In this document: in pieces, positions 11,620 to 63,499 of the stretch
How positions within the stretch are numbered: position 1 is the first letter of the stretch
Layout of the letters: every line of letters begins with the position of its first letter
DNA from: Macrostomum lignano
Taxonomy: Eukaryota
Assembly: GCA_002269645.1 (NCBI GenBank)
Contig: NIVC01000009.1
Span: 3,124 to 67,123 of the forward strand
Reading direction: 5' to 3'
Length of the DNA stretch: 64,000 nucleotides
Notes under the pieces: generated by a model
What the model was told of the DNA's origin: nothing
The model's database searches: none
The model's input: only the letters and a program-made list of their open reading frames with translations
Made by a program: the position numbers and the translations under genes

Positions 11620-12132
11620 ATGATATCTGATGGACCCACCTGGTAGTGAATCATCTACCCTTCCTGATGATACCTGACTGACTGGCTCACCTAACAGTGA
11701 ATCATCCCCTTCCTGATGATACCTGAGTGACTCACCTGGCAGTGAATCATCTACCCTTCCTGATGATACCTGAGTGCCTCACCTGGTAGTGAATCATCTA
11801 CCCTTCCTGATGATACCTGACTGCCTCATCTGGCAGTGAATCATCTACCCTTCCTGATGATACCTGACTGCCTCATCTGGCAGTGAATCATCTACCCTTC
11901 CTGATGATACCTGAGTGCCTCACCTGGCAGTGAATCATCTACCTTTCCTGATGATACCTGAGTGCCTCACCTGGCAGTGAATCATCTACCCTTCCTGATG
12001 ATACCTGACTGCCTCATCTGGCAGTGAATCATCTACCCTTCCTGATGATACCTGAGTGCCTCACCTGCCAGTGAATCATCTGCCCTTCCTGATGATACCT
12101 GAGTGCCTCACCTGCCAGTGAATCATCTAACC
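11620..12132. repeat. 47-bp minisatellite (cctgatgatacctgagtgcctcacctggcagtgaatcatctaccctt)
   Basis: About 10-11 copies. Confidence 0.9.
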
Positions 12133-12718
12133 TTCTTGATTACTCTGTTTTTGGCCAACTACTTGTTACCCTTCATACACAATAAAACAATACTCGTACA
12201 ATAAGAAAAATGAAATGAGATGTCTAATGAATTTCTTTAAAAGTTAAAAAGAAATTGAACGCAAGCGAAAAAGTGCAAATGAAAAATGTTGGTTTGCATT
12301 GCATAAATCATGTAATAAAGTGAACAATGGGCTACTAACTTGGACTTTATAAATTTAATTATTCTGATAGACAAGCACAGCAACACGGCAGGGTTACACA
12401 GTGGTGCGAATAACCGAAAGTTCAGTCTACTTCAGACACACCTTGCCGATGCACTTTATAGTAAATAGTTCAATGCGCTGTACGAGAGGTTGGCAAAGCC
12501 GCTGCTGGATTTGCGTAATAAGACGAAAGAGAAAAAACTTATTAGACTTGTTTATGCGAGAAAATAAACACCCCCCCCCAGTTGTTGAGACCCGCATTCA
12601 TAGCCTAAGCATTAGGCAAACACAAGTTAAGACAAAAGAGCAGTTTACATTACAGCTACAACTTGCAGTTCAGTCTACTACCAGCCCAGTAGCAGTATAC
12701 ACACGCTAACGATATTAT

Positions 12719-24162: not shown

Positions 24163-26159
24163 ATGGCCACCGCCAGCAACTTCCTGCAGAAATTTCGCGA
24201 CAAGGACACCCGCGCCTTCAAGAACTTCACGGCCAGCCAGTTCCTGGAGGTGTGGAGCCACTACGATCTGGATGGTAGCGGCTACATCGAGGACCGGGAG
24301 CTGGACAGCTTCCTGCGCGAGTTCGTCAGCTCCATCGTTCCCGGCCGGATTGGCGAAGAGGTCGTGTCGGACAGCGCCCTGCAGGACCTCAAGGAGGAGT
24401 TCATGCGGGCGTACGACGAGAACGAGGACAATAAAATCGAGATTGGCGAGCTGGCGCAGATGCTGCCGACGGAGGAGAATTTCCTGCTGCTGTTCCGGCG
24501 GAGCAATCCGCTGTCCAGCAGCGTGGAGTTCATCCGGGTCTGGCGACAGTTCGACCGTGACAGCTCCGGCCACATCGATGCCGACGAGTTGGGCGACTTC
24601 CTGCGGCACATCCTGGGAGAGAAGCGCGATGTCGGCGAGGAGCGGATGAAGGAGTACCGGGACACCATCCTGCGCCTGTTTGACAGGTGCGAGGGGCCTG
24701 GAATTCTAACGATTTGGAATTTATGATTCTTAGAATCAAGGATTCTAACAAATTGGAATTTGCGATTCTAAGAATCAAGGATTCTAACAAATTGGAATTT
24801 GCGATTCTAAGAATCAAGGATTCTAACAAATCGGAATTTGCGATTCTAAGAATCAAGGATTCTAACAAATTGGAATTTGCGATTCTAAGAATCAAGGATT
24901 CTAACAAATTGGAATTTGCGAATCTAAGAATCGAGGATTCTAACAAATTGGAATTTGCGATTCTAAGAATCGAGGATTCTAACAAATTGGAGTTTGCGAT
25001 TCCAAGAATCAAGGATTCTAACAAATTGGAATTTGCGATTCTAAGAATCAAGGATTCTAACAAATCGGAATTTGCGATTCTAAGAATCAAGGATTCTAAC
25101 AAATTGGAATTTGCGAATCTAAGAATCGAGGATTCTAACAAATTGGAATTTGCGATTCTAAGAATCGAGGATTCTAACAAATTGGAGTTTGCGATTCCAA
25201 GAATCAAGGATTCTAACAAATTGGAATTTGCGATTCTAAGAATCGAGAATTCTAACAAATTGGAGTTTGCGATTCTAAGATCGGATTCTAAGAAATTGGA
25301 ATTTTCGATATTAGGAATAGATTATCCTAACAATTTGGAGCTTGCGATTCTAAGAATTGAGGATTCTAACAATGTGGAATTTAAGATTTTAAGAATTGAG
25401 AATACAAAGCGTCTTATATTTGGAATTCTACGGATTTAAAATTTCGGATTTAAAGAAGTATGCACTTTGTATTTAAAAAATTACAATTTTTGATTCCAAG
25501 AATCAAGAATTTCAATTTCTAAAAGTGTGAAATCGGATTCTGAGAATTAAGTTTTTTTTAAGATCCTCTACCGATTAAAACTTTGTGGATCTTGACGATT
25601 TGAAATTCTCAGAGTTTTCAATAGATTCTGAGTAAGCTAATTCTCTAGTTAGGTTTCAAAGTTTACAGCTTAGCATTTAATTAGTCTCACAAGTATTGAG
25701 CTTCTATATATTCTGAGAGAAGCAACTACTTCAGCTGAAGAAACTGAAACAATTTGAATTCCCGCCATTCCATTATTTCTAAGAAACGGTGACGGCCAGC
25801 TGCAGCTGAGCGAGCTGGCCCGCCTGCTGCCAGTGAAGGACAATTTCTTGGCCAAGCCGCTGCTGAAAAACGCGTCCCGCCTGTCCGGCCCCGAGATCGA
25901 CCGGCTGTTCCGCAAATACGACATGGACAGGAGCGGCCAGATCGAGGGAGACGAGCTGGCCGGACTGTTGAAGGACCTCCTGGAGCTGACCGGCGAGGAC
26001 TACGACGAGTCCAAGATGCTATACTTCCGCGATGTCATCATGGAGCAGTGGGACGCCGACAAGGACGGCCGGATTGCCCGCGACGAGTTGAAGATGATTC
26101 TGCTGCAGCACAAGCGGCTGGCGGAGGAGCAGGAAGCTCTGCAGTCTGGCTGCGACTGA
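24163..26159 (+). CDS. Cbp53E: Calbindin/calretinin/secretagogin family hexa-EF-hand protein (Cbp53E-like), 299 aa
   Basis: Exons 24163-24686 and 25784-26159, phase 2 (D-R|NGDGQLQLSEL; AAG acceptor). EF loops YDLDGSGYIE, YDENEDNKIE, FDRDSSGHID, FDRNGDGQLQ, YDMDRSGQIE, WDADKDGRIA. Confidence 0.9.
24700..25440. repeat. 39-bp minisatellite in calbindin intron
   Basis: ttctaagaatcaaggattctaacaaattggaatttgcga about 15 times, decaying at the 3' end. Confidence 0.95.
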
Positions 26160-26950: not shown

Positions 26951-28244
26951 CCCCACAAATTTGGTAGTTTTTCAAAGAAATCCCTGTTAAATTGATTTTT
27001 GCGACACAATACGAATAGCGAAATATCGATAAAGGCGAGTGAACGGTGCCCCAATTGCTAATTATCATTAAATTGGATGTTAAAAAATCTGTTTAATAAG
27101 TCCTTTATTTAAAATATATATAGTCTTAAATATTTTCAATCGTTCACTCAAACTAAGTCGAGAGATATGGACTTAGTTGAGAATACAAATAGTTGTCATG
27201 AAATAATTTAGACAAAAACTAGATGCAGATAGAAAAGTAAATATAGTAAGAAAACATTACACACTACTAATCTTTGTTCAGTGACCGACCAAAATTTGGG
27301 TCTACAAGAAACAAAAATGTGACGTTGCCAGTTTGAGGTGGTCCCGAAAAGGGCCGTTGGACTACTGTTTCTCTATAGTTTCAACCCTTCAGTTTCACCG
27401 TTTCAACTAAACTTTTCCATTTGTTTATTGCGACGTTTGCTTGTAGTCGTGCCCAACGATTTTGTGGCAATTTCCAATTCACTGTATATTTTGCTATCCT
27501 CTCTCGCGACCGTATAAAATTGGCACGATCGATAATTTTAAGTTCTCTCGCCAGCCAATGAAAATCACTCGTGCTTCGCGCTACCCCCCCTCTGCGCTCC
27601 TTTATTAAACCCCCGCCTGGCGGCGGCACTCCTCCCCCCCCGTCCTTATCTGTGCTTCTCTCTTCCTCCCGGCCTGTCCTCGGCCTTGTTTTCCTTCTCT
27701 CTGTCTGGGCCAGCCTGTTTACACTGCCTGCCACTGTCTGCCACGGCTAACGCCAATCTCACCACTACGCATCTGCCACTGTTGTACTCATCGCCGTTAC
27801 TCACCACGTTGCATCGTCTTGCATCACTCGCCTACCACTCGACTACAATCTCTAACTCACCTTCAAGTCAAAACCATTGTTGCAGCCGCCAGTGCCCCAA
27901 AGCGCAATAAGTTCTATATTGATATTAACCGCATCGAATATTGATCTCAACAATAATAACCAACTACGGCCAGTTTCCGGCCTTGTATGCCAAGTGCTCC
28001 GCTACACAAATCCGCTATCAAGACTTGACTCGATTCATTTGGGACTAAAACGGCCCTTTTAAGGGTCACGGACAACATCAAATAACGTGACAAAAAGCTC
28101 AAAAACGATGCAAAATAACAATGAAGGAAGCAACTAACTAACAAATATATTTTTGATTCAGTATAAAGTTGTTTATTTACAATTTCAATGCGTTCTTTGA
28201 GCTTGTTAAACTCAGTATAATCGAGAAGGAATATCTGGTTTCTT

Positions 28245-28846
28245 GAAAATACGACTTATTTTAACGCTGTGCTAATTGATTGAGAAGAAATGTGTGATTT
28301 CTTGGAAATACGACTTATTTTAAGGCTGTGCTAATTGCTTGAGAAGAAATGTGGTTACTTGGAAATACGACTTATTTTAACGCTGTGCTAATTAATTGAG
28401 AAGAAATGTGTGATTTCTTGGAAATACGACTTATTTTAACGCTGTGCTAATTGATTGAGAAGAAATGTGTGATTTCTTGGAAATACGACTTATTTTAACG
28501 CTGTGCTAATTGATTGAGAAGAAATGTGTGGTTACTTGGAAATACGACTTATTTTAACGCTGTGCTAATTAATTGAGAAGAAATGTGTGATTTCTTGGAA
28601 ATACGACTTATTTTAACGCTGTGCTAATTGATTGAGAAGAAATGTGTGATTTCTTGGAAATACGACTTATTTTAACGCTGTGCTAATTGATTGAGAAGAA
28701 ATGTGTGATTTCTTGGAAATACGACTTATTTTAACGCTGTGCTAATTGATTGAGAAGAAATGTGTGATTTCTTGGAAATACGACTTATTTTAACGCTGTG
28801 CTAATTGATTGAGAAGAAATGTGTGATTTCTTGGAAATACGACTTT
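28245..28846. repeat. 59-bp minisatellite
   Basis: ggaaatacgacttattttaacgctgtgctaattgattgagaagaaatgtgtgatttctt about 10 times. Confidence 0.95.
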
Positions 28847-29130
28847 TTCACGCTCTGGTAATCAATTGCTCGAAAAGTTTGTAAATTTGGAAAAATGAGA
28901 GCAGAGTAAAAGACGAGGGATCATTTGTATCTAAGCATGCCCAAATGTCAGTCTTGTAAGGGGAATCTGTGTGTAATATGCCCAAAAAAGGAACTGTTTA
29001 TATAATTTTTTCAATTGTTCTGCTCAAATTCAACAATGGCAGCATGCTAGAGAGCATGGTTTAATGGAATAATAATGCCAATACCAAGCTGAGATCAGAG
29101 ATTCTGAACAAATTCCTAAGAAAACAAACT

Positions 29131-32075: not shown

Positions 32076-37156
<5,081 letters not shown>

Positions 37157-38978: not shown

Positions 38979-41900
38979 ATGACGCAACGTCATCAGACAG
39001 ACAGGCAGAGCGCTGAGCGTCAGCTCCGAGCCGAGTATCCAGAATTTAGCGAGCAGTGCATTCAGCAGACTTTAGAGGCGGTGAGCAAGAGTGTGGCGTG
39101 TGTGCATGGAAATTCCGTGGAAGTTCCGTTAATTAGCTGCTATTTATGTACGAGTATATGACATTGCTGCTGTAATTTCTGTCAATTAATTGCTTTGTGT
39201 TTTTTTGTTATGCTAGAGCCTACGGGCCCGTATTGCCAATATTTTAATGCAGTGTAAAACTAATTCAGAGTGAGCAGTTTTGGCTGTAACTCTATACAGG
39301 CACTAATACAGGCACTAATACAGACACTAATACAGACACTAATACAGGCACTAATACAGACACTAATACAGGCACTAATACAGACACTAATACAGACACT
39401 AATACAGGCACTAATACAGGCACTAATACAGGCACTAATACAGACACTAATACAGGCACTAATACAGGCACTAATACAGGCACTAATACAGGCACTAATA
39501 CAGACACTAATACAGGCACTAATACAGACACTAATACAGGCACTAATACAGGCACTAATACAGACACTAATACAGACACTAACACAGGCACTAATACAGA
39601 CACTAATACAGGCACTAATACAGACACTAATACAGGCACTAATACAGACACTAATACAGGCACTAATACAAGCACTAATACAGACACTAATACAGACACT
39701 AATACAGACACTAATACAGACACTAATACAGACACTAATACAGGCACTAATACAGACACTAATACAGACACTAATACAGGCACTAATACAGACACTAATA
39801 CAGGCACTAATACAAGCACTAATACAGACACTAATACAGACACTAATACAGACACTAATACAGACACTAATACAGGCACTAATACAGACACTAATACAGA
39901 CACTAACACAGGCACTAATACAGACACTAATACAGGCACTAATACAGGCACTAATACAGACACTAATACAGGCACTAATACAGACACTAATACAGACACT
40001 AATACAGGCACTAATACAGGCACTAATACAGGCACTAATACAGGCACTAATACAGACACTAATACAGGCACTAATACAGACACTAATACAGGCACTAATA
40101 CAGGCACTAATACAGACACTAATACAGACACTAACACAGGCACTAATACAGACACTAATACAGGCACTAATACAGACACTAATACAGGCACTAATACAGA
40201 CACTAATACAGGCACTAATACAAGCACTAATACAGACACTAATACAGACACTAATACAGACACTAATACAGACACTAATACAGACACTAATACAGGCACT
40301 AATACAGACACTAATACAGACACTAATACAGACACTAATACAGGCACTAATACAGACACTAATACAGGCACTAATACAAGCACTAATACAGACACTAATA
40401 CAGACACTAATACAGACACTAATACAGACACTAATACAGGCACTAATACAGACACTAATACAGACACTAACACAGGCACTAATACAGACACTAATACAGG
40501 CACTAATACAGGCACTAATACAGACACTAATACAGGCACTAATACAGACACTAATACAGGCACTAATACAGGCACTAATACAGGCACTAATACAGGCACT
40601 AATACAGACACTAATACAGGCACTAATACAGACACCATTTTTGCTCACTGTTGTGATGTTGCATATCCTTTTCAACTCTTTACAATTTGTATACTATTAA
40701 GCTTTATTTACTCGTTTTTGAATAATCTTTTCAGGATCGAATTTTACAGAGGGTTTTTTATATCACAGTTATTGGGCAATACTCTTGTTTCCGTTAGCGC
40801 ATAAAGCTTGAAATTAACAAATTAATTCTCAGGAGTCTAAGAAACTCTAAGGAAATTCCGCCGGCTGAAGCAGAGTTTACAGCAATTATTAATATAGTTA
40901 ATTTTGTCTCGAATTTGGCAGAAATAGAGCCCTAGCAGCCTATACTATGCCTTGTGCCCCGTGTGCAAGGGGCTGCGACAAGATCAGCTTACCTGCCCCC
41001 CCCCGTAACCGAACCTGTTAGTTTGCAGTTAGCTTGTCTGCTATAGGCGACCTTCCTTTACGATGAAGCGAAGAGATTAGCTACCTCCCGCTTGCTGCCA
41101 AAGCCAATGTAGTTAGGCGCATATAGTCCAGCGGTAATAAGTGGTGCTGAAGTTGAAAAAAATTACAATCGTACTCGTATGCACAAAACCTTCGAAGAAA
41201 TTTTTCTCCTTTAGCTACTACTTTTGTTAGCGTCTTTGGTATTTCTTATCTTTTGGCTTCTCGCATGTATTAAGCTAGTACATGTAAGAGTTCTGCAAGC
41301 AAGGTTGATGAGTGCAGGTGCACTTGAGCTTTTTATACTCTTTCGTGGCCCAGTTGCTGGATTCACCTGTGTCAGCTAGGACTCCAGTTGCTGGATTCAC
41401 CTGTGTCAGCTAGGACTCCAGTTGCTGTATTCACCTGTGTCAGCTAGGACTCCAGTTGCTGGATTCACCTGTGTCAGCTAGGACTCCAGTTGCTGTATTC
41501 ACCTGTGTCAGCTAGGACTCCAGTTGCTGTATTCACCTGTGTCAGCTAGGACTCCAGTTGCTGTATTCACCTGTGTCAGCTAGGACTCCAGTTGCTGTAT
41601 TCACCTGTGTCAGCTAGGACTCCAGTTGCTGTATTCACCTGTGTCAGCTAGGACTCCAGTTGCTGTATTCACCTGTGTCAGCTAGGACTCCAGTTGCTGT
41701 ATTCACCTGTGTCAGCTAGGACTCCAGTTGTTGGATTCACCTGTGTCAGCTAGGACTCCAGTTGCTGGATTCACCTGTGTCAGCTAGGACTCCAGTTGCT
41801 GTATTCACCTGTGTCAGCTAGGACTCCAGTTGCTGTATTCACCTGTGTCAGCTAGGACTCCAGTTGCTGTATTCACCTGTGTCAGCTAGGACTCCAGTTG

Positions 41901-43946
41901 CTGTATTCACCTGTGTCAGCTAGGACTCCAGTTGCTGTATTCACCTGTGTCAGCTAGGACTCCAGTTGCTGTATTCACCTGTGTCAGCTAGGACTCCAGT
42001 TGTTGGATTCACCTGTGTCAGCTAGGACTCCAGTTGTTGGATTCACCTGTGTCAGCTAGGACTCCAGTTGCTGGATTCACCTGTCTTAGGCCTATTATTG
42101 TTTGAGCAGCAATTTGTCTGTGCAGTACGTAGATGTCAGAAGTTCATTTTGACTCATTTCAAAGCAATATCTCTAATCTCTATTTCATTCTCCACCGTCG
42201 CGCTTCGATACCGCAGCACGAATTTTCCCTGAGCCGGTGCCGCGAGGCCCTAAACCAGCTGAGAGGGCGGCAGCAGGCCAAACCGAAGCGCCGTTTCAAA
42301 TGGCGCTGGCCCAAGCTGGGCGGTGGCAACCGCGGCGGCAGCAGTCGGCAGTTGTCGCCAACAGCAGCGGCAGCGCCAGCAGCTGCGGAGGCGACTGCAA
42401 CAAACGGATCTGCTGCTGCGGCAGTGCAGCCTGTTGGACAAATGTCTGACGTGGATCACCACGGTGAGATGACGGGTCTTGAAGACATCTTCCCACAAGC
42501 ACTTCATTCACACGCTCACACAGGGCTTGGGGTTGCTATCATGGGTGTTGACTTGCACGACAAGCCCTTTGGCTTTGGTCAATTTTCGCGAACAAAGCTC
42601 TGAATTAATGTGACCGCCGCGAGAGGCAGACGCGTTCACCGCTGAGCTGCTCCGCCCTGAACCAGCTACCCTTAGTTGCTAAAACTGGTTCAGCTTCGGG
42701 ACGGCAAGGCATTTCGCGCCAATTTTGAACCTTCCAGTAGCCGTGCAGCGCCACAGCCTGAATCGCATTGCTAGCGCCCGGTCGACATCGTCCAACAGCC
42801 TGACGCTTGCCTGGCGGGCCGTGACCGCCCGACGGGAGATGCTGGCGCTGCTGCTGCCGATGCACGTCTCGGCTACGCAGAACGGCGTATCGCAAGGCGC
42901 GGCCAGCTCCGTAATCTTCGAGCTGGCTCGCGACACCCTATTAAACGATATTCGTCAACTGAATCGCCAATGGGCGACTCTTAACAGTTCGAGAGGCGAT
43001 TGGCAGCAGCAGCAACAACACACGCTGGCTCCAAGCTCGGCCGTTACGCGACGTCGTCCAAAATTCGGTTGCAACTCTGGCGGCGGTGGGAGCGGCAGCG
43101 CAGATTCTGGACAGGCGCCGCGGCATCAGCGAGTGTCCGTTTCGCTCCTGCCAGCTCCCAGTGGGGCCGCCGGTGAGCTTTGAGTGTTGTATAAAACAGA
43201 ACAGTCAACTATACTCAGCAACATTGAAAAGTCGCCACTCTATGGCCCAGTGAGCAATTTTCAGAGCGAGTATATTAGAAATTGTTATCCTATTTTTTTA
43301 TTAGAGGCAGGGGGGTTGTGTGTCCCTGGCGCATTTTAAGCGACATAGGCACACAACCGGCGAGAGGCATTACTGCCCATTCCGCCGACTCCCCTGAGCA
43401 GGCATACGAGCGCGCGGATACGTACGCAGGCACACACTCACACAGGAGTGTACAGCGGCCCTAATTTTTTTTTATCGTTAGGCATGTACACTTCACTACG
43501 CCTTGGGGGTTGGCCCTCAAGGGTGTTAATTGCACGAGCAGAGCCAAGCCGAGATTCAAATTCAGCCCCAAATTAATGTGACTGCACTGGGAATCGAGCC
43601 TGGGCCGCTGGCACATCAGAGCGCCGCGCTGGACCACTGGGCTACGGCCCGCGTCCCAATGCGACTGCTGACATGACAACAATAAGCTACTGGCATTGCT
43701 AGCATAAATTTCACATGGAAAATCTATTCTTCAGGTGCCCCGCCTCCGATCCTGCTGTTCCGGCCATCGTCGGTGCCGCAGGAGGCTGCCCCGGCGCCGT
43801 CGCTGCCGCCGTGGCACTGTCAGTGCTGCACATTCGCTAACCACCCGGACCTGCTTGAGTGCGAAATGTGCTCAGCGGAGCGGCCGCAGCTGCAGAGACC
43901 GCGAGCCGCTTCGATTTCATTGGATCGGCCAACTGCCAGGAGCTAG
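38979..43946 (+). CDS. TAB2: TAB2/TAB3-like CUE + NZF ubiquitin-binding adaptor, 331 aa
   Basis: Exons 38979-39080 (MTQRHQTDRQSAERQLRAEYPEFSEQCIQQTLEA), 42217-42463 (HEFSLSRCREALNQL; completes a CUE-like domain), 42738-43172, 43735-43946 (WHCQCCTFANHPDLLECEMC, like TAB2 [20 protein letters not shown]). Phases 0/1/1 compatible. Confidence 0.75.
39293..40634. repeat. 12-bp minisatellite cactaatacag(a/g), ~112 units
   Basis: Directly visible; source of the QALI/QTLI, ISAC/ISVC and LVPV pseudo-ORFs. Confidence 0.97.
41350..42084. repeat. 34-bp minisatellite (ccagttgctgtattcacctgtgtcagctaggact)
   Basis: About 21 copies in TAB2 intron 1. Confidence 0.97.
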
Positions 43947-44625: not shown

Positions 44626-44930
44626 GAGGGTAGCTGTCCACAGCATTGACTAGAAGGTAGGGTAGCTGTCCACAGCATTGACTAGAAGGTAGGGTAGCTG
44701 TCCACCGCATTGACTAGAAGGTAGGGTAGCTTTCCACCGAATCGACTAGAAGGTAGGGTAGCTGTCCACCGAATCGACTAGAAGGTAGGGTAGCTGTCCA
44801 CCGAATCGACTAGAAGGTAGGGTAGCTGTCCACCGAATCGACTAGAAGGTAGGGTAGCTGTCCACCGAATCGACTAGAAGGTAGGGTAGCTGTCCACCGA
44901 ATCGACTAGAAGGTAGGGTAGCTGTCCACT
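44626..44930. repeat. 32-bp minisatellite (gtagggtagctgtccaccgaatcgactagaag)
   Basis: About 9 copies. Confidence 0.9.
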
Positions 44931-44944
44931 GCATTAATACTACA

Positions 44945-45430
44945 GTGCATGACAACCTCATTAAAGTAGTGTACAGCAGCTATAAATTCCGCTGTTCCCA
45001 ACCGCCTCATCCCGTCAACAAGGACAAGACCGAGCTGGTGACTCATCACGGCGGCTGCCACTGCGGTGCCGTGACCTTCACAGTAAGGGCACCGGCAGTG
45101 ATCAATGTCATCAAATGCTCCTGCTCAGTATGCAGCATGAAAGGCAATGATCATTTCATTGTGCCAGCCAGCCACTTCACCCTGCTGACGGGCTCCGACT
45201 GTTTAACAACTTACACCTTCAACACGCACGCAGCCAAGCACACGTTCTGCGCCAGGTGCGGAGTGCAGAGTTTCTACACGCCCAGATCCAATCCGGACGG
45301 CTACGGCATCAATGTGCACTGCCTGCGGCCGGACACCGTCAGCCAGTTAGTCTGGGAGCACTTCGACGGCCAGAACTGGGAACAGTCGATGGAGACAATC
45401 GGAGAGAACCTGTCCAATCGGTCCAAGTAG
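44945..45430 (+). CDS. CENPV: CENP-V / GFA-family zinc-binding protein (true start exon not identified)
   Basis: HHGGCHCGAVTF..CSCSVC..HFIVP..YTFNT..AKHTFCARCGVQSFYTPRSNPDGYGINVHCL..FDGQNWE. No in-frame ATG before the domain; acceptor-like pyrimidine tract ends near 45022. Confidence 0.88.
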   Translation: MHDNLIKVVYSSYKFRCSQPPHPVNKDKTELVTHHGGCHCGAVTFTVRAPAVINVIKCSCSVCSMKGNDHFIVPASHFTLLTGSDCLTTYTFNTHAAKHTFCARCGVQSFYTPRSNPDGYGINVHCLRPDTVSQLVWEHFDGQNWEQSMETIGENLSNRSK

Positions 45431-45987
45431 CTTTAGTCGAAGCTTTACACCTAGCGGGGAAATGGGGATAGGCAAGAAGCTATTTTTCTAAGCCATGCAC
45501 AAGCTTCACTTTTCTTACTCAGAAGCACAACTGCAATGCAAATTACATGCTACCCAGAAGCTACAAGTGTAAAGGCCGCTTCACATCCCGTATAGCAAAC
45601 TGCGGAAGAAATACTCGTACTTCTTTCGTGACTCAATTTTGTGATTCTTTATAAAAAAGACTATTTCACACTGAGTTCGAGACAAATAAAGAAATAAACA
45701 ACTAAATTAATATTTGGTTGAATAATGTAATAGTAAATGATAAAAAATCACTAATGTTAAACGCGTTTATTTAACATTTATTCATACATGTAAAATGTGA
45801 AAAACACGTTTCTGAATGCAGAATACGATTAAACGCAAGTCATGCAAAGATTTTAGAATGGACACGCATTTAGACAATGCAGAAACTTTTACAACTAGCT
45901 CGATCGATGATACATGAAATTGCAAATGTATACTTTGTACAAAGGTTATTCAAGAGACTCAGTCCTTGAAGAATGTGCAGATGATGC

Positions 45988-47904
45988 TCAGTCGACCTCC
46001 TCAACGGTGGGTCCTCCAGCTCGCTGATGTCCAGGCTGAGGCTGACCAGACTGCTGCTGCTGCTGATGAAGCTTGGCCATGATTGGCGAGCAGCGGCTGC
46101 TGAGTTGCTGCTGCTGGTGGGCAATCTCGTCCTTCTCGGCAGTCTGGTTGTTCTCCAGCCAGGAAATCACTTGCTCGCAGGCGGCCACCACCTCGGCGGA
46201 GTCCTTCTCGCCCAGCTTGTCCTTGCAGTCGTTGGCAGCCTGCTTGTACTGGAAGGCGAGCGACTCGAGCTGGTTGCGGGCCGCCAGGCGCTCGCGGTGC
46301 CGCTCGTCCTCCTCGCGGAACTTCTCCGCATCCCGCACCATCCTGTCGATCTCGTCCTTCGAGAGGCGGCCCTTGTCGTTCGTGATCGTGATCTTCTCCT
46401 CCTTGCTGGTGCTCTTGTCTTTCGCCGACACCACCAGGATTCCGTTGGCGTCAACGTCGAAGGTCACCTCGATCTGAGGGACTCCGCGCGGCGCTGGCGG
46501 GATCCCGTCCAGGTTGAACCGGCCCAGCAGGTGGTTGTCTCTGGTGAGCGCTCGCTCGCCCTCGAACACCTGCACCGTGACGCCGCTCTGGTTGTCCGAG
46601 TAGGTGGTGAACGTCTGCGTCGCCTTGGTCGGGATGCGGCTGTTCCGCTCGACAATCTTGGTCATCACCCCGCCGGCGGTCTCGATGCCGAGAGACAGCG
46701 GCGCCACATCCAGCAGCAGCAGGTCGTCGATCTTGTCGTCCTTCACGCCAGTCAGCACCGCAGCCTGCACGGCAGCTCCGTAGGCGACCGCCTCGTCCGG
46801 GTTGATCGACTTGTTCAGCGTCCGACCGCCCATGAATTCTTGCAGCAACTTCTGCACCCTCGGGATCCGGGTTGATCCGCCAACCAGCACGATCTCGTTG
46901 ATGTTGCTCTTGTCCATCTTGGCGTCTCTCAGCGCTCGCTCCACCGGCTCCATCGTCTGGCGAAACAGGTCGGCGCACAGCTCCTCGAATCGAGCCCTGG
47001 TGACGCTCGTGTAAAAATCGATGCCCTCGAACAGCGAGTCAATCTCGATGCTCGCCTGTGCCGAGCTGCTCAGCGTTCGCTTCGCTCGCTCAGCCGCAGT
47101 CCGAAGGCGTCTCACAGCCCGAGCGTTGCCGCTCATGTCCTTGCGGTACTTGCGCTTGAACTCTTGCATCAGGTGCTCAACCAGACGATGATCAAAGTCC
47201 TCGCCGCCGAGGTGGGTGTCGCCGGCGGTTGCGCGCACCTCGAACATGCTGCCCTCCGACACTGTCAGGATGGACACGTCGAACGTGCCGCCTCCCAGGT
47301 CAAAGATGAGAATGTTCTTCTCACCCTGCAGGTTCTTGTCCAGACCGTAGGCCAGTGCCGCAGCAGTCGGCTCGTTCACGATGCGCAGCACGTTCAGTCC
47401 GGCAATCGCCCCGGCATCCTTCGTTGCCTGTCGCTGACTGTCGTTGAAGTAGGCCGGCACTGTGATCACCGCGTCAGACACCTTCTCGCCGAGGTAGGCC
47501 TCCGCCGTCTCCTTCATCTTGGTGAGAACCATGGCGGAGATCTCCTCCGGGTAGAAGCTGCGCCTCTCGCCCATGTACTGCACCTCAATCTTGGGTCGGC
47601 CTCCGTCGTTCGTCACCTTGAATGGCCACAGCTTCATGTCCCTCTGCACCGTCTCGTCTCCGAACTTTCGTCCGATCAGACGCTTCGCGTCAAACACCGT
47701 GTTGTCCGGATTCATCGCCACCTGGTTCTTTGCAGCGTCGCCTACCAGCCTCTCCGTGTCCGTGAAGGCCACGTAGCTGGGAGTGGTTCGGTTGCCCTGG
47801 TCATTGGCAATGATCTCCACTTTGCCTGCCTGGAACACGCCAACGCACGAGTACGTGGTGCCCAGGTCAATGCCGATTGCAGGTCCGTTGTTGCTCTTAC
47901 CCAT
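45988..47904 (-). CDS. HSP70: Cytosolic inducible-type Hsp70, 638 aa, intronless (copy A)
   Basis: [39 protein letters not shown]-terminal GPTVEEVD. Confidence 0.98.
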
Positions 47905-48061
47905 GTTGTCGATCGATTAATTCGCACTTGCTTGATATACGAGTAGTAGCGTAGGCTGATGCGTCTGTTGCCTTGATGGCTTGCTTGGCTTTGCTGTTCG
48001 TTTCGTTCGCCTTGCGATCCGATTTCAATTCTTGCCTCCAATTCTGGGCCGGGTGCTTCTC

Positions 48062-48156
48062 TTTTATAGACTCCGGCCCGTTTCTAGAAGTTTCCCGCAC
48101 CATCCTCCGCGAATGCGCCGCGAGCTATTTTTAGCTCGTTCTGGAAATTTCTCGAA
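48062..48156 (-). promoter_or_regulatory. Hsp70 copy A promoter: TATA box and two heat shock elements
   Basis: Mirror of copy B: TATA 48068-48062, HSEs 48094-48082 and 48156-48139. Confidence 0.9.
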
Positions 48157-48575
48157 AAAAGAATTGCTTGACAAATTTTACCGTTTGCGTCTATTTCGCC
48201 TACTTTAAGTAGAAAGTAACAAACCTGTAGTCTAATATTCTTACAAACATATTTACAATGTTGAATGAATCAAGAAATCCTGTGGAAAATGGGGTTAACG
48301 AATATTAACGATCGTTTTGGTAGCAAAGAATTCATTTTGTTATTCAATATTTATTTGTTAAAACAATCAGGTCTTTCAGATTAACTGATTCTGGAAATCG
48401 GCGATATGTATAGAACAAGCATTGCAAGCACAAAACAAAAGTCAGAAAAGTGCTATGTTTTAAAGCCGACTCAATCTTCTGAAGTGAAACAAAAAGAAAA
48501 TACAAACAGTTAGTCATTTTAATATAATTTTTTAGTTAGTGCTTATTGGAAGTGCACAAAACAAAATGGCAAAAA

Positions 48576-48694
48576 AGACAACAGCATTTGGTATTCCCAG
48601 GCGGTCACCCATCCAAGTACTAACCAAACCCAACGTTGCTTAACTTCGGTGATCAGACGAGAACCGGTGTTTTCAACGTGGTATGGCCGTTGCC
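48576..48694 (-). rRNA. 5S rRNA gene (copy A)
   Basis: Reverse complement GGCAACGGCCATACCACGTTGAAAACACCGGTTCTCGTCTGATCACCGAAGTTAAGC...GGGAATACCAAATGCTGTTGTC, followed by a T6 terminator. Confidence 0.95.
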
Positions 48695-48879
48695 AATTAC
48701 CGAGAGCACTCAACTTCAATTTATACTTTGCTACCGCCGCATTTGTGTCAGTAGGCAATACGTAACGTAAGTAATATGGCCCATTTTGTTTCGACCAAGA
48801 GCCAATAGCCTCCTCGCCTTATCGGGATGATGAATCTACCAATCCTTAATTGATAGTTCTCTCTGCGTTGAATCGACAA

Positions 48880-49965
48880 TCAGATAATGACAGTCAGGTA
48901 ATGGCACTCAGATAATGATCGTCATATAATGACAGTCAGATAATGACAGTCAGATAATGACAGTCAGATAATGACAGTCAGATAATGACAGTCAGATAAT
49001 GACAGTCAGATAATGACAGTCAGATAATGACAGTCAGATAATGACAGTCAGATATGACAGTCCGATAATCACAGTCAGATAATGACAGTCAGGTATGACA
49101 GTCAGATATGACACTCAGATAATGACAGTCAGATAATGAAAGTCAGATAATGAAAGTCAGATATGACAGTCCGATAATGACAGTCAGATAATGACAGTCA
49201 GATATGACAGTCCGATAATCACAGTCAGATAATGACAGTCAGATAATGACAGTCAGGTATGACAGTCAGGTATGACAGTCAGATATGACAGTCAGATAAT
49301 GAAAGTCAGATAAAGACAGTCAGATAATGACAGTCAGATAAAGAAAGTCAGATAATGAAAGTCAGATATGACAGTCCGATAATGACAGTCAGATAATGAC
49401 AGTCAGATATGACAGTCCGATAATCACAGTCAGATAATGACAGTCAGATAATGACAGTCAGGTATGACAGTCAGGTATGACAGTCAGATATGACAGTCAG
49501 ATAATCACAGTCAGATAAAAACAGTCAGATAATGACAGTCATATGACAGTCCGATAATCACAGTCAGATAATGACAGTCAGATATGATAGTCAGATATGA
49601 TAGTCAGATAATGACAGTCAGATAATGACAGTCAGGTATGACAGTCAGATATGATAGTCAGATAGTGACAGTCAGATAATGACAGTCAGATAATGACAGT
49701 CAGATAATGACAGTCAGATAAAGACAGTCAGATAATGACAGTCAGATATGATAGTCAGATATGACAGTCAGATATGACACTCAGATAATGACAGTCAGAT
49801 ATGATAGTCAGATAATGACAGTCAGATAATGACAGTCAGATAATGACAGTCAGATAATGACAGTCAGATAATGACAGTCAGATATGATAGTCAGATAATG
49901 ACAGTCAGATATGACACTCAGATAATGACAGTCAGATAATGAAAGTCAGATAGTGACAGTTCTGA
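48880..49965. repeat. 13-14-bp minisatellite (gataatgacagtca), ~1.08 kb
   Basis: About 78 units with variants (gatatg, gataatcac, ggtatg). Confidence 0.95.
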
Positions 49966-50234
49966 AATCGACATTTAAGATTCCAGGAGTTCACAACGGC
50001 CTTATTCTGCATGGAATCGAAATTTCCATTTCCATTGAGTGCGAAAAGGATGCTTTGCAAAAGTTGAGTTTGGTTCTGGACTCTGACTGCTTTGTTTGAT
50101 TTGCTTGTTTGTTTTTGTTTATTTGGTTGAAATACATGAAATGGAAATAATCCATTATCGGCCCGACTTTTCGGGCCAAAATGAAATCGTCTATGGCAAT
50201 AATCGAATATCAGCCCGCCCGATAGCCACGTAGT

Positions 50235-51670
50235 CATGGTACAATATATATGTTACTCAGGGACAACTAAAACTACCGGGACGCGAAACAAGCCAAGGTG
50301 AAAAAAGTTGGGGGCTCGTTTGAAAGCAGTGTTCTATGGCCGTTCCAACTGCAACTCTTCAGTCTAAAGGGTGGTGAGGGCAAATAAAAAGCCCTCAACT
50401 CGTGTGCGACTGTGAAAAATGTCGAGAAAGTGCAGCGTCTTTAACTGCAGATCAAACTATAACTCAGAAGAAAGCCGAAACGCCCTCAACTCTTGTGCGA
50501 CTGTGAAAAATGTCGAGAAAGTGCAGCGTCTTTAACTGCAGATCAAACTATAACTCAGAAGAAAGCCGAACACGATATTTTCTCTTCCTTGAGATGCACG
50601 AGAACGGGAGCGTTGGAGACAAACCCTACCAAATATTTTTGAGGTAAGAAGGATGTTAATTCTAAGCGATCATACGCTGGTATGCGTGGATGAATTTATT
50701 ACAAACAAATTGTTAAAAATAACCACTGCGATAAAATTTACCATTCTAGAAAGTGACTGAACACATGGACATATGCCAAAAGCACTGGCCAAGTGACACC
50801 CCATGTTGAAGAATGGTCGACATGAAAGACCGAAAGATCCGCCTTCTGTCTTCTCTGGCTTTCCCTCTTCGTGCTTGATACAGACAGACAGACAGACAGT
50901 TTTTATTGCCCTAAACTTCTCCGTTCGCGCATTCGCATACGCCAGTTTTGAACAATAATTGGCAAACTGAATCCAATGGAACCTTAACTATTCAACCGCC
51001 AGGTGCAGACAGTTATATCGGCCAAATGGATGGACGTGATCCGACTGTACAAATCAGAAGAATATCACGTTGTCAAACGAACGGAATTAACCCACGAAGC
51101 TTGCTATCCTTCAGTTCAAGCATACAGAAAAACGAAGGTAACACTCGCTCTCCAAGTCTTCAATGAAAAGGTTGTTGCAGCACTGAAGTGCGACGGCTCC
51201 ATAGACACGACAGTATGAGTCGTCGGCTTACGAATGTTTATTTTAAAGGCCTGGTAAAGCGCTCATCGAAGGTTGCACCTGCGCCGACTACATCGCACGA
51301 CAGAAAGCTACGCAAACTGGAAGGCCAGTGAATTTGCGGTAGAGTTTTTAGTATTCTGTCTTTGGAGTTTCAAATTTTCCAATCCGAAATCTTTCATATC
51401 TAGCTGCTCCTCATCTGGGTTCCTCCTAAAATTCGTTCTGTTTAGTCCTGATTTTCTGTGTTCTATTCTACGAGTACGAGTTGCCGTGTACTTTTGTACA
51501 CACACCATTTCATGCTTTTAAACTTTTTTCTCTTGTGCTTATCTCACATGCTTAAATATATGTAATTTTCGCTCAGTACCCCAGTTTTTCCTATACAGTA
51601 TACAGGTTTCCGTATAAGTTCCTCCTCAAATAAGTTATGTTCAGTTCCGTTCCACGATATATACACCATG
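50235..51670 (+). mobile_element. Decayed P-element-superfamily transposon
   Basis: TIR-like ends CATGGTACAATATATAT / ATATATACACCATG. Fragments: RLK..AVPT (THAP-end-like, ~50325), LVCVDEF (~50680), NNWQTE (~50951), SAKWMDVIRLYKSEE..TELTHEACYP..KVTLALQVFNEKVVAALK (51016-51190). Internal 91-bp tandem duplication at 50391-50570. No clear TSD. Confidence 0.6.
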
Positions 51671-51904
51671 CTAAGTTTAAACCTTTTCTTCGTGAATATC
51701 TCGCGTGTCTAATCGTATGTCATTGTGCTCTGTACGGCCGTTTTTTAGTACCCAAAAAAACAAAAAAACAATATTTAAAACTGAACAAAAACCTTTTAGA
51801 CAAGTTACTGAACCTTTTAAAGCAAAAATAATACTGTGGCCTTAGTCTTTTCAGCAGCTAAGCTAAGCATTTATTGCATGAAAAATCGGGCGCCCATTAC
51901 CTTA

Positions 51905-52162
51905 CCTGACTGTCATTATCTGACTGTCATTATCTGACTGTGATTATCGGACTGTCATATCTGACTGTCATTATCTGACTGTCATTATCTGACTGTCATT
52001 ATCTGACTGTCATTATCTGACTGTCATTATCTGACTGTCATTATCTGACTGTCATTATCTGACTGTCATTATCTGACTGTCATTATCTGACTGTCATTAT
52101 CTGACTGTCATTATATGACGATCATTATCTGAGTGCCATTACCTGACTGTCATTATCTGATT
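51905..52162. repeat. Inverted shorter copy of the 14-bp minisatellite (tgactgtcattatc)
   Basis: Same variant order as 48880-49095 in reverse complement. Confidence 0.95.
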
Positions 52163-52345
52163 GTCGATTCAACGCAGAGAGAACTATCAATTAAGGATTG
52201 GTAGATTCATCATCCCGATAAGGCAAGGAGGCTATTGGCTCTTGGTGGATACAAAATGGGCCATATTACTTACGTTACGTATTGCCTACTGACACAAATG
52301 CGGCGGTAGCGAAGTATAAATTGAAGTTGAGTGCTCTCGGTAATT

Positions 52346-52464
52346 GGCAACGGCCATACCACGTTGAAAACACCGGTTCTCGTCTGATCACCGAAGTTAA
52401 GCAACGTTGGGTTTGGTTAGTACTTGGATGGGTGACCGCCTGGGAATACCAAATGCTGTTGTCT
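52346..52464 (+). rRNA. 5S rRNA gene (copy B)
   Basis: 119-nt 5S sequence with A-box (AGTTAAGC) and C-box (TGGATGGGTGACC); terminal helix GGCAACGGC/GCTGTTGTC; TATAAA at about -31 to -26. Confidence 0.95.
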
Positions 52465-52469
52465 TTTTT
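52464..52469 (+). terminator. Pol III oligo-T terminator of 5S copy B
   Basis: TTTTTT directly after the 5S 3' end; mirror A6 at 48571-48576. Confidence 0.85.
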
Positions 52470-52883
52470 GCCATTTTGTTTTGTGCACTTCCAATAAGCA
52501 CTAACTAAAAAATTATATTAAAATGACTAACTGTTTGTATTTTCTTTTTGTTTCACTTCAGAAGATTGAGTCGGCTTTAAAACATAGCACTTTTCTGACT
52601 TTTGTTTTGTGCTTGCAATGCTTGTTCTATACATATCGCCGATTTCCAGAATCAGTTAATCTGAAAGACCTGATTGTTTTAACAAATAAATATTGAATAA
52701 CAAAATGAATTCTTTGCTACCAAAACGATCGTTAATATTCGTTAACCCCATTTTCCACAGGATTTCTTGATTCATTCAACATTGTAAATATGTTTGTAAG
52801 AATATTAGACTACAGGTTTGTTACTTTCTACTTAAAGTAGGCGAAATAGACGCAAACGGTAAAATTTGTCAAGCAATTCTTTT

Positions 52884-52978
52884 TTCGAGAAATTTCCAGA
52901 ACGAGCTAAAAATAGCTCGCGGCGCATTCGCGGAGGATGGTGCGGGAAACTTCTAGAAACGGGCCGGAGTCTATAAAA
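52884..52978 (+). promoter_or_regulatory. Hsp70 copy B promoter: 4-unit HSE, 3-unit HSE, TATA
   Basis: TTCgaGAAatTTCcaGAA (52884-52901), GAAacTTCtaGAA (52946-52958), TATAAAA (52972-52978). Confidence 0.92.
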
Positions 52979-53135
52979 GAGAAGCACCCGGCCCAGAATT
53001 GGAGGCAAGAATTGAAATCGGATCGCAAGGCGAACGAAACGAACAGCAAAGCCAAGCAAGCCATCAAGGCAACAGACGCATCAGCCTACGCTACTACTCG
53101 TATATCAAGCAAGTGCGAATTAATCGATCGACAAC

Positions 53136-55052
53136 ATGGGTAAGAGCAACAACGGACCTGCAATCGGCATTGACCTGGGCACCACGTACTCGTGCGTTGG
53201 CGTGTTCCAGGCAGGCAAAGTGGAGATCATTGCCAATGACCAGGGCAACCGAACCACTCCCAGCTACGTGGCCTTCACGGACACGGAGAGGCTGGTAGGC
53301 GACGCTGCAAAGAACCAGGTGGCGATGAATCCGGACAACACGGTGTTTGACGCGAAGCGTCTGATCGGACGAAAGTTCGGAGACGAGACGGTGCAGAGGG
53401 ACATGAAGCTGTGGCCATTCAAGGTGACGAACGACGGAGGCCGACCCAAGATTGAGGTGCAGTACATGGGCGAGAGGCGCAGCTTCTACCCGGAGGAGAT
53501 CTCCGCCATGGTTCTCACCAAGATGAAGGAGACGGCGGAGGCCTACCTCGGCGAGAAGGTGTCTGACGCGGTGATCACAGTGCCGGCCTACTTCAACGAC
53601 AGTCAGCGACAGGCAACGAAGGATGCCGGGGCGATTGCCGGACTGAACGTGCTGCGCATCGTGAACGAGCCGACTGCTGCGGCACTGGCCTACGGTCTGG
53701 ACAAGAACCTGCAGGGTGAGAAGAACATTCTCATCTTTGACCTGGGAGGCGGCACGTTCGACGTGTCCATCCTGACAGTGTCGGAGGGCAGCATGTTCGA
53801 GGTGCGCGCAACCGCCGGCGACACCCACCTCGGCGGCGAGGACTTTGATCATCGTCTGGTTGAGCACCTGATGCAAGAGTTCAAGCGCAAGTACCGCAAG
53901 GACATGAGCGGCAACGCTCGGGCTGTGAGACGCCTTCGGACTGCGGCTGAGCGAGCGAAGCGAACGCTGAGCAGCTCGGCACAGGCGAGCATCGAGATTG
54001 ACTCGCTGTTCGAGGGCATCGATTTTTACACGAGCGTCACCAGGGCTCGATTCGAGGAGCTGTGCGCCGACCTGTTTCGCCAGACGATGGAGCCGGTGGA
54101 GCGAGCGCTGAGAGACGCCAAGATGGACAAGAGCAACATCAACGAGATCGTGCTGGTTGGCGGATCAACCCGGATCCCGAGGGTGCAGAAGTTGCTGCAA
54201 GAATTCATGGGCGGTCGGACGCTGAACAAGTCGATCAACCCGGACGAGGCGGTCGCCTACGGAGCTGCCGTGCAGGCTGCGGTGCTGACTGGCGTGAAGG
54301 ACGACACGATCGACGACCTGCTGCTGCTGGATGTGGCGCCGCTGTCTCTCGGCATCGAGACCGCCGGCGGGGTGATGACCAAGATTGTCGAGCGGAACAG
54401 CCGCATCCCGACCAAGGCGACGCAGACGTTCACCACCTACTCGGACAACCAGAGCGGCGTCACGGTGCAGGTGTTCGAGGGCGAGCGAGCGCTCACCAGA
54501 GACAACCACCTGCTGGGCCGGTTCAACCTGGACGGGATCCCGCCAGCGCCGCGCGGAGTCCCTCAGATCGAGGTGACCTTCGACGTTGACGCCAACGGAA
54601 TCCTGGTGGTGTCGGCGAAAGACAAGAGCACCAGCAAGGAGGAGAAGATCACGATCACGAACGACAAGGGCCGCCTCTCGAAGGACGAGATCGACAGGAT
54701 GGTGCGGGATGCGGAGAAGTTCCGCGAGGAGGACGAGCGGCACCGCGAGCGCCTGGCGGCCCGCAACCAGCTCGAGTCGCTCGCCTTCCAGTACAAGCAG
54801 GCTGCCAACGACTGCAAGGACAAGCTGGGCGAGAAGGACTCCGCCGAGGTGGTGGCCGCCTGCGAGCAAGTGATTTCCTGGCTGGAGAACAACCAGACTG
54901 CCGAGAAGGACGAGATTGCCCACCAGCAGCAGCAACTCAGCAGCCGCTGCTCGCCAATCATGGCCAAGCTTCATCAGCAGCAGCAGCAGTCTGGTCAGCC
55001 TCAGCCTGGACATCAGCGAGCTGGAGGACCCACCGTTGAGGAGGTCGACTGA
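53136..55052 (+). CDS. HSP70: Cytosolic inducible-type Hsp70, 638 aa, intronless (copy B)
   Basis: Same as copy A except one residue (KDDTIDD vs KDDKIDD). Confidence 0.98.
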
Positions 55053-56717
55053 GCATCATCTGCACATTCTTCAAGGACTGAGTCTCTTGAATAACCTTTG
55101 TACAAAGTATACATTTGCAATTTCATGTATCATCGATCGAGCTAGTTGTAAAAGTTTCTGCATTGTCTAAATGCGTGTCCATTCTAAAATCTTTGCATGA
55201 CTTGCGTTTAATCGTATTCTGCATTCAGAAACGTGTTTTTCACATTTTACATGTATGAATAAATGTTAAATAAACGCGTTTAACATTAGTGATTTTTTAT
55301 CATTTACTATTACATTATTCAACCAAATATTAATTTAGTTGTTTATTGTCATTTCTCACATGGCATATGCATGGCGATCGTTTAGGGACGGTCTAACGGG
55401 ATTACAATGGATATTAACTCGGACTTGCTGGCCTATCTATACATGTTAGTCCAGTACCCGTTTCTCCCAGTCCCAGCCAATTCAGAGGAGAGTTCATATA
55501 CATTTTACGGTATTCATATTATTTAAATGCTTACTGAAGGAACTGAAGAACTAATCACAATTCGCAATTTTCTCATGCGCCCATTCTTTCTCTAGAGTAA
55601 TTTCTCAGACAAGCTTTAATTCTAACGTCCTTATAATTTCATGGACATGACCTGTCGCTGTAACACTCATTTGAACCTCCTGCGCTGTAAGCAAATTTTT
55701 TTGCGACAACTCTTGCACTGTCGACGTCCCCATGTATACAGGTTGTACATAATGCTTGCAATACATGTATATTAAACACCTGTTTATAATACATAAAGCA
55801 TATTTTAGAAAACAAATTGCAGTCTGAAAAAGTACTGAGTTTCACTAAGGGTATACATATACCATAGATTTTAAGAGCTGGCTTTATGTTCATTTTGATG
55901 TTACAAGTACACTGATACATGCAGCTGTAACTATACCAATACTATATATACATTGTACCATATCCAACCGTTGAGTAATTTTATGGACGATCCAATTGAT
56001 CGGACATACAGTCTGCATGCACTACATAGATTCGGTTCTGAACCGGAATCGAGAATACGAAAAAGGTCATTGGTTTAGATCGACAAAGCCAGAAGAGAAG
56101 AAACAAATATGGGGATCCAACTGGCTCTGGTTCCGAAAGTACTATAGAATCAATAGAATCGATACTTAAAGTATTACCCAACAACTGTAAATAAGCAATT
56201 AATTTCAAAAGTGAATGACTCCGTAAATTAAAAACAGTAAAACATAGTTTATATATTACTTTTACGTATTGACTTTTAATTTACATTGAAGTTTTTGTTA
56301 AAATATGTAATAATTTACAAAATTTTAAACTTTCCAAGAAAAATCTAAGAAAAGCTCAACAACTTAAAATAGTACCTCTTGGTCCTTTTGTAAGCATGAG
56401 GAACAAGATGAATAACTATCTTTATGATCTTAATTTCGAAATATATTAGAAGTAATTTCTGGTGTTCTTAACTGTTAGGAATTATAAACGCGAGTTAAAA
56501 ACAATGAAAATATACAATGTTCTTAGACTTAAAACAACGAAAAGAGTTTTGTCATTGCGTGATTATTGTCTACAGGAACTACACTACTGTATTAAATTGG
56601 TCGTTTGCTCTTGGTACAAAAAGCCTTACTTAATATCTACCTATTTAAATCCAGAATAGGTGCCAATTACAAAGTCGATGCACACGTTTTACTATAATTT
56701 TTTAAATGGTAACTATA

Positions 56718-57729: not shown

Positions 57730-63430
<5,701 letters not shown>

Positions 63431-63499
63431 GTAATGAGGATTGGCTTAGGGCTCCGCTTGGGGCTGCTGATTTGCACTGTGGTTCTTGCGAGCAAGAGT

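Follow-up and report, generated by a model that had tools for sequence, protein, structure and literature searches.

Near-identical Hsp70 genes placed head to head, each with a 5S rRNA gene, in a probable inverted segmental duplication of the flatworm Macrostomum lignano

How two neighboring Hsp70 genes that point away from each other come to be almost identical, and what keeps them so, is the question raised by a locus of the flatworm Macrostomum lignano. The stretch of DNA analyzed (64,000 nucleotides of contig NIVC01000009.1, here called the window) contains a 9.65-kb palindrome, each arm of which holds an Hsp70 gene, its own heat-shock promoter, and a 5S rRNA gene. Judged from its sequence, the palindrome is very probably a genuine inverted segmental duplication of the M. 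lignano nuclear genome, set between ordinary host genes.

A repeat finder places the arms of the inverted repeat at 45693-49054 and 51986-55347, each 3,362 nt long and gapless. Base by base, arm A differs from arm B by five substitutions and no insertions or deletions, a divergence of 0.16%; the sites are 46733/54307, 48729/52311, 48790/52250, 48793/52247, and 48815/52225. When gaps are allowed, BLAST extends the match to 45693-49136 (left arm, minus strand, gapless up to 49054) against 55347-51902 (right arm, plus strand, gapless from 51986) with 99.5% identity, and leaves an unpaired spacer of 2,765 nt between the arm ends. The palindrome originally described at 45693-55347, with arms of about 3.4 kb around an asymmetric 2.8-kb spacer, is thus confirmed. 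The BLAST search found the arm nowhere else in the window, and homology is lost abruptly at the outer end on both sides.

From the outside in, each arm is made of a 3' untranslated region (UTR), the Hsp70 coding sequence (CDS), the 5'UTR, and the promoter; beyond the AT-rich stretch that comes next lie the 5S gene and, separated from it by 180 nt of unique sequence, a 14-bp satellite. The identity between the arms extends beyond the 1,917-nt CDS, with the 5'UTR, promoter, 5S gene, and 3'UTR being the same on both sides, and every component that the original prediction had assigned to the arms (an intronless Hsp70, its 3'UTR, a promoter with heat-shock elements and a TATA box, and a 5S gene) was recovered where it had been placed.

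Hsp70 copy A (45988-47904, minus strand) and copy B (53136-55052, plus strand) are both intronless, a single unbroken open reading frame (ORF) running from ATG to stop and encoding 638 amino acids with a C-terminal EEVD. The two proteins are one residue apart, K391 in copy A and T391 in copy B, the latter through an A to C change on the sense strand at 54307. K391 is found in all the paralogues and relatives seen; it appears to be the ancestral state, with T391 of copy B derived. PF00012 is present in all the close database matches, and the nearest of the named ones are Hsp68/Hsp70 B2/A1-like. Both ORFs are accordingly predicted to be intact genes of the inducible cytosolic type (HSPA1/Hsp68/Hsp70-B2). 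On the minus strand, 295 nt with 30% GC (45693-45987, mirrored at 55053-55347) make up the 3'UTR and downstream DNA of copy A, with sense-strand AATAAA motifs near 45766-45786, and the outer boundary of the arm lies about 60-75 nt past these likely poly(A) signals.

Both outer arm boundaries (45684-45699; 55341-55347) open with AATAAAC on the strand antisense to Hsp70. On the left, this motif adjoins an AATAAA that could serve a converging gene with a GFA domain (ORF 44945-45430), in which case the end of the palindrome may coincide exactly with the end of the neighboring transcript.

The nearest proteins to the window Hsp70 are those of M. lignano. UniProt A0A1I8I8J9 is the window Hsp70 save for gaps left by mis-predicted introns, an identity that includes 75 residues read through the promoter and 5'UTR, and it places the pair in a free-living member of Platyhelminthes, a phylum other than that of Drosophila, as had been claimed. 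A second Hsp70 lineage of M. lignano shows 92-95% identity to the window Hsp70. An exact look-up of both window proteins in the contig collection returned no record, and neither did that of P0040. Several other Hsp70 models of M. lignano (P0017, P0121, P0123, P0008, P0018, and P0124) contain spurious introns, UTR read-throughs, or fusions.

The layout of the pair leaves a trace in a further UniProt entry, A0A1I8I9J3 (P0122), a 1,070-aa 'Secreted protein' that exists as three identical M. lignano entries. Its residues 1-459 correspond to antisense-strand Hsp70 exons, which are followed by a read-through of the promoter and 5'UTR and then by a complete sense Hsp70. On the window it is collinear with the plus strand from 46027 to about 47450, and then from 52916 to 55049. 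Antisense and sense Hsp70 sequences collinear on one strand are possible only on a head-to-head pair. Since the entry is a few residues off the window, with K391 on both sides, it comes from a non-identical assembled locus. It is a mis-prediction running across the palindrome, and as such it supports the same head-to-head layout at a separately assembled locus.

The two ATGs lie 5,231 nt apart, so the genes have two separate promoters rather than a shared bidirectional one. Heat-shock element (HSE) trimers, with the pattern GAAnnTTCnnGAA or its complement, occur six times in the window, all of them within the two Hsp70 promoters; the expected count is 0.85, and none of 100 shuffles reached six. 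The promoter of copy B (52884-52979, plus strand) comprises a distal HSE of four alternating GAA/TTC units (52884-52901), a GAGCTAAAAATAG box (52903-52915), a proximal HSE (52946-52958), and, 14 nt downstream of the latter, the TATA box TATAAAAG (52972-52979). An A-rich 5'UTR of roughly 140 nt then reaches the ATG at 53136. The promoter of copy A (48061-48156, minus strand) is its exact mirror, with HSEs at 48082-48094 and 48139-48156, the box at 48125-48137, and the TATA box at 48061-48068. Each Hsp70 copy therefore has its own complete promoter of two perfect HSEs, a conserved CTAAAAATAG box, and a TATA box. Canonical HSEs are known from the literature to drive heat induction in M. lignano, and a heat-shock RNA-seq study of the species, comparing 37 °C with 20 °C, has been published (bioRxiv 10.1101/2024.12.18.629116). 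Both copies are predicted to be driven independently by heat-shock factor, and the pair would double the inducible Hsp70 dose.

An environmental contig from a JGI metagenome (L007) encodes an Hsp70 85% identical to that of the window. Its promoter retains both HSEs, the GAGCTAAAAATAG box base for base (L007 173-185), the TATA box, and a block of the 5'UTR. This conservation can be read as a small phylogenetic footprint supporting a working promoter. The sequence between the HSEs contains an exact MEF2-type CTA(A/T)4TAG box, which may represent a conserved second regulatory input. L007 and a second Macrostomum-like Hsp70 contig, L008 (Logan), are too short to cover the gene arrangement or the position of a 5S gene. 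A scan of metagenomes for the conserved promoter block (CTATTTTTAGCTC N0-8 GTTCNNGAA) returned 14 loci, none of them beside a close Hsp70, and these were read as chance matches.

An Rfam scan of the 64 kb reports exactly two RNA genes, both of them 5S, and a permissive Rfam search added no other RNA gene within the palindrome. 5S gene A (48576-48694, minus strand) has the same orientation as Hsp70 A. 5S gene B (52346-52464, plus strand) is preceded by TATAAAT at -31 to -25 (52315-52321) and followed, directly after its 3' end, by a T6 run. The two genes are identical to each other because both lie inside the arms. Each matches RF00001 over its full length (model positions 1-120) with 116.5 bits, against a gathering score of 38, and the 5S primers published for M. 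lignano fit the coding sequence without a mismatch; the genes look functional. The 3' end of gene B lies about 415-420 nt upstream of the distal HSE, across AT-rich DNA.

In M. lignano, the main 5S rDNA sits at the end of chromosome MLI2p, where units of about 1.65 kb are repeated in tandem; the fluorescence in situ hybridization (FISH) study that described it allowed for a few scattered copies outside the cluster (PMC5704211). No such head-to-tail array is present in the window, whose two 5S genes are inverted and 3,651 nt apart; they are therefore outlying copies and not members of the array.

No other protein-coding gene separates the two Hsp70 genes, and the DNA between them holds only the 5S genes, satellite DNA, and what is probably the decayed remnant of a transposase. 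The 14-bp satellite (GACAGTCAGATAAT) occupies 1,086 nt on the left (48875-49960, plus strand, about 79 copies), of which only the first ~260 nt pair with the right arm, and 264 nt in inverted orientation on the right (51902-52165, minus strand, about 19 copies). This four-fold difference in length bears out the asymmetry originally ascribed to the spacer. The left array includes a higher-order duplication of 205 nt (49110-49314 versus 49315-49519, 98% identical), and the monomer itself contains the quasi-palindrome TGAC-A-GTCA.

The unpaired center of the palindrome (49961-51901) is 1,941 nt of unique DNA with 41% GC. With moderate confidence, this segment is considered to hold the decayed remnant of a THAP9/P-element-like transposase (50510-51215, plus strand), made of a putative frameshifted THAP zinc finger from 50510 to about 50806 and a fragment resembling the TNP-like GBD at 50988-51215. 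Unmodified, the sequence gives a weak THAP match (14.5 bits, E 0.06); bridging one frameshift and removing one intron raises the score to 28.6 bits, against a Pfam cut-off of 23.9. About 200 nt past it, a 76-aa frame matches PF21788 (TNP-like_GBD), the GTP-binding insertion domain found in P-element-type transposases, with 18 bits and an E value of 0.004, below the cut-off of 24.8; this fragment has no sequence match in PDB. A 91-bp tandem duplication on the plus strand (50387-50568, two copies, 98% identical) doubles the start of the THAP exon, with ATGs at 50419 and 50510. At the ends of 49955-51910, a search for terminal inverted repeats gave nothing convincing. The remnant lies halfway between the two hsp70 promoters. 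In Drosophila, P elements are known to prefer the regulatory DNA of hsp70, with which P-type transposons have been associated (PMC1592238).

The unit that was duplicated would comprise satellite, 5S gene, AT-rich spacer, heat-shock promoter, intronless Hsp70, and 3'UTR, now present twice, head to head, around the unpaired 2.8-kb center, and it can be thought of as a tight package running from the satellite to the end of the transcript. Short inverted repeats can promote fold-back or template-switch events that lead to inverted duplications around a unique center. A likely route would be such an event at the quasi-palindromic satellite monomer, beside an older P-element-like remnant.

What has kept the arms identical since then is less certain. 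Four of the five differences are packed into 87 nt (48729-48815, mirrored at 52225-52311) on the inner side of the arm, just upstream of 5S gene A and adjoining the satellite, a clustering with p ~4e-4 under uniform placement; the remaining 3.0 kb carry a single one. We lean towards arm-to-arm gene conversion, which would keep the outer 3.0 kb identical, with an escape at the inner edge, where the innermost ~150 nt with their four differences and the satellite arrays of unequal length would lie beyond its reach.

The strongest competitor of this reading is a palindrome that is real but very young, in which the five substitutions would have accumulated since the duplication with no gene conversion at all. 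It agrees well with the low divergence of the arms, and a change in satellite length can arise very fast, but an even accumulation of substitutions is hard to reconcile with the cluster at the inner edge. The M. lignano model P0123, moreover, has a near-identical CDS and yet a 5'UTR with an indel and a substitution, while the 5'UTRs of arms A and B are identical, which hints that other Hsp70 copies may be more diverged than arm A is from arm B. The threefold occurrence of the head-to-head model in the UniProt proteome is also what would be expected if the structure predated the whole-genome duplication, though the three entries could be haplotigs. A recent origin thus keeps a real chance, smaller than that of gene conversion. 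Some features of the arms count against conversion. The non-coding segments are AT-rich (30% GC) and lack the enrichment that long-running GC-biased conversion might give, as a young palindrome would too; the high GC content at third codon positions of the Hsp70 CDS (0.83) lends conversion no usable support, as it could just reflect codon usage; and the cluster of differences next to the satellite could be due to local hypermutability instead of marking the edge of a conversion tract.

Whether gene conversion or recency explains the identity of its arms, the palindrome is not the first of its kind. In Drosophila melanogaster, Hsp70Aa and Hsp70Ab at 87A7 form a divergent inverted pair. As in the flatworm, these are intronless, HSE-driven, inducible Hsp70 genes that are nearly identical, and the choice of 87A as the analogue in the original prediction was apt, though other precedents exist. 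The flatworm arms differ from 87A7 in being defined to the base and in including about 1.2 kb upstream of the ATG, and the arms at 87A7, whose boundaries are scs/scs', are without 5S genes. Gene conversion in Drosophila is documented by population and interspecific data (Bettencourt & Feder 2001, 2002, as cited in PMC2793543), whereas in the flatworm we infer it.

The nematode Caenorhabditis elegans offers a second precedent. Its genes F44E5.4 and F44E5.5 form a divergent Hsp70 palindrome with arms of 2,207 bp, 99.7% identical, and a 126-bp spacer (Zhao et al. 2007, PMC1803023). The palindrome is conserved in C. elegans, C. briggsae, and C. remanei, which has been taken as a sign of active maintenance (PMC1803023), and work by Nikolaidis and Nei on the concerted evolution of these genes is cited in PMC3966223. 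The two systems share head-to-head Hsp70 paralogues and near-perfect arms that reach into intergenic DNA. However, the intergenic region of F44E5.4/F44E5.5 is a compact, shared regulatory region of 446 bp, while the flatworm genes have separate promoters and, unlike the nematode pair, enclose two 5S genes, satellite DNA, and a putative transposon remnant. The cross-species conservation, too, is evidence from Caenorhabditis, the flatworm pair being known from one species. The hsp-16 genes of C. elegans similarly lie in a palindrome, a 3.8-kb inverted repeat (Russnak & Candido 1985, as described in PMC1803023), with arms 100% identical in coding and intergenic sequence and a unique spacer of a few hundred bp; these encode small heat-shock proteins arranged as pairs of pairs, and not Hsp70.

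A further parallel is found in the oyster Magallana (Crassostrea) gigas, a lophotrochozoan like M. lignano. Sequence OY970751.1 (locus L005) encodes two Hsp70s of 634 aa, at 5540-7444 on the minus strand and 10001-11905 on the plus strand, which are placed head to head. The arms, 5323-7764 and 9682-12131, each measure about 2.4 kb, share a core of 2,143 nt that is 99% identical, and are separated by a spacer of about 1.9 kb. The oyster copies are more diverged than those of the flatworm, with 22 differences over 1,905 CDS positions and 3 amino acid changes. The oyster palindrome contains no 5S gene and, by the strict pattern used here, no perfect HSE trimer. The genome of M. gigas is described in PMC11268181 as having more than 100 HSP70 genes. 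Two other molluscs, Sinanodonta and Gigantopelta, each show a single Hsp70 gene within ±10 kb, and the flatworm Schistosoma mattheei (OX103947.1, L001) has at least three adjacent Hsp70 genes that form a direct tandem, all of them on one strand; flatworms thus do not share the inverted layout as a rule. The first of the S. mattheei models, with 825 aa spread over 11.4 kb, appears to be a fusion, and the locus includes two matches to the mir-3492 family. The proposed search of relatives for the same inverted pair thus gave a direct tandem in Schistosoma and the same layout in an oyster.

Head-to-head Hsp70 palindromes recur, then, in Arthropoda, Nematoda, Mollusca, and now Platyhelminthes, and the phenomenon itself is already established. 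Parsimony favors an origin of the M. lignano pair inside the macrostomid lineage, separate from those of the fly, nematode, and oyster pairs, because its arms hold lineage-specific non-coding DNA, a 5S gene, and satellite, and because the Hsp70 genes of S. mattheei stand in direct tandem. The independent origin that had been proposed is plausible on these grounds, whereas the novelty it implied was overstated in view of the precedents in Caenorhabditis and the oyster. Independence is hard to prove, since concerted evolution erases the phylogenetic signal that a proof would need.

The only unusual feature of this Hsp70 palindrome is that both arms contain a 5S gene. Most simply, a stray 5S copy would have been duplicated together with the rest of the segment. 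Alternatively, the 5S genes could be working parts of the locus, bound by RNA polymerase III (Pol III) and TFIIIC, that keep the chromatin open or insulate the Hsp70 units from the satellite and transposon sequence at the center. Their position would suit this role, between the repetitive center and each Hsp70 promoter and in the orientation of Hsp70. The two copies are also identical and undamaged, a TATA-like box precedes each and a T-run terminator follows it, and they lie outside the main array of 1.65-kb units on MLI2p. Yet the linkage of 5S and Hsp70 is seen at a single locus with no sign of conservation, the oyster palindrome manages without a 5S gene, and the authors of the FISH study expected that there might be a few stray copies outside the cluster. 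A working role for the 5S genes is therefore doubtful. In its most developed form, the idea would make the macrostomid 5S gene a conserved boundary, or nucleosome-free anchor, that keeps the Hsp70 promoter poised, with the palindrome retained by selection on a combined Pol II/Pol III unit, and this we regard as improbable. The Drosophila 87A7 locus is flanked by the scs/scs' boundaries, and the insulating role proposed for 5S would be analogous to theirs.

That the palindrome might be an artefact of assembly has to be considered for any structure of this kind, either as a fold-back long read with a missed adapter or as two alleles or homeologues wrongly joined in inverted orientation within the satellite. 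The near-perfect identity of the arms invites such an explanation, M. lignano assemblies are repeat-rich and polyploid, and satellites like the one at the inner arm ends are classic sites of misjoins. A fold-back read, on the other hand, would give a symmetric center, and here satellite arrays of unequal length enclose unique DNA. In the case of an allelic misjoin, the right flank would be the reverse complement of the left, but the flanks share no inverted homology and carry different genes: on the left the GFA-domain ORF, with exons of a RhoGAP and a proteasome ATPase further out, and on the right VPS13-like exons at 60879-63434. Long-read errors are typically indels, whereas arms A and B differ by substitutions, of which one is non-synonymous, and the gene model A0A1I8I9J3 runs across the same kind of head-to-head pair at an assembled locus not identical to this one. 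This last point is weakened by the fact that the UniProt models may share a PacBio data set with the window. Both the fold-back and the misjoin were rejected on the asymmetric center and the unrelated flanks, and an artefact is very unlikely. The original prediction had argued from the asymmetric spacer and the arm substitutions; both hold, and the unrelated outer flanks can be added to them.

Least probable of all, and rejected, is that a transposon, of which the P-element-like sequence in the center would be the remnant, picked up the Hsp70/5S unit and copied it, making the palindrome a composite mobile element: the putative THAP remnant and the weak TNP-like GBD fragment are indeed collinear on one strand of the center, but the transposase is truncated and frameshifted, neither the spacer ends nor the arm ends show terminal inverted repeats or target-site duplications, and the window contains no further copy of the unit.

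Besides the palindrome, the window contains a second satellite, the 12-mer TAATACAGACAC, which extends over about 1.3 kb (39294-40635) and has a short inverted block of the same repeat 3 kb away (36147-36291). The window also has an unusually dense set of unrelated minisatellite arrays with periods of 12-47 nt among its ordinary genes, and several of the arrays yield long spurious ORFs. Examples are found at 308-764, 1356-1997, 3875-4771, 10269-11068, 11614-12140, and 24703-25400, and further ones at 28218-28868, 32961-33510, 41350-42084, 44627-44929, and 59335-59656. ARAGORN calls an 87-nt tRNA-Cys with the unusual anticodon ACA at 27931-28017 (minus strand), which Rfam does not report at the gathering threshold; the likely explanations are a pseudogene, a gene with an intron, or a false call.

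For the annotation of the species, the palindrome brings to light UniProt models that are wrongly annotated, the 'Secreted protein' A0A1I8I9J3 among them. M. lignano is, to our knowledge, the sole flatworm with stable transgenesis, and it offers a tractable system for testing the upkeep of a palindrome by gene conversion and the effect of a 5S gene on a heat-shock promoter, with the segment 52884-53135 as a compact candidate hsp70 promoter for inducible transgenes. With Platyhelminthes and Mollusca added to the phyla that have head-to-head Hsp70 palindromes, the view of this layout as a recurrent, and probably favored, outcome for heat-shock genes is strengthened.

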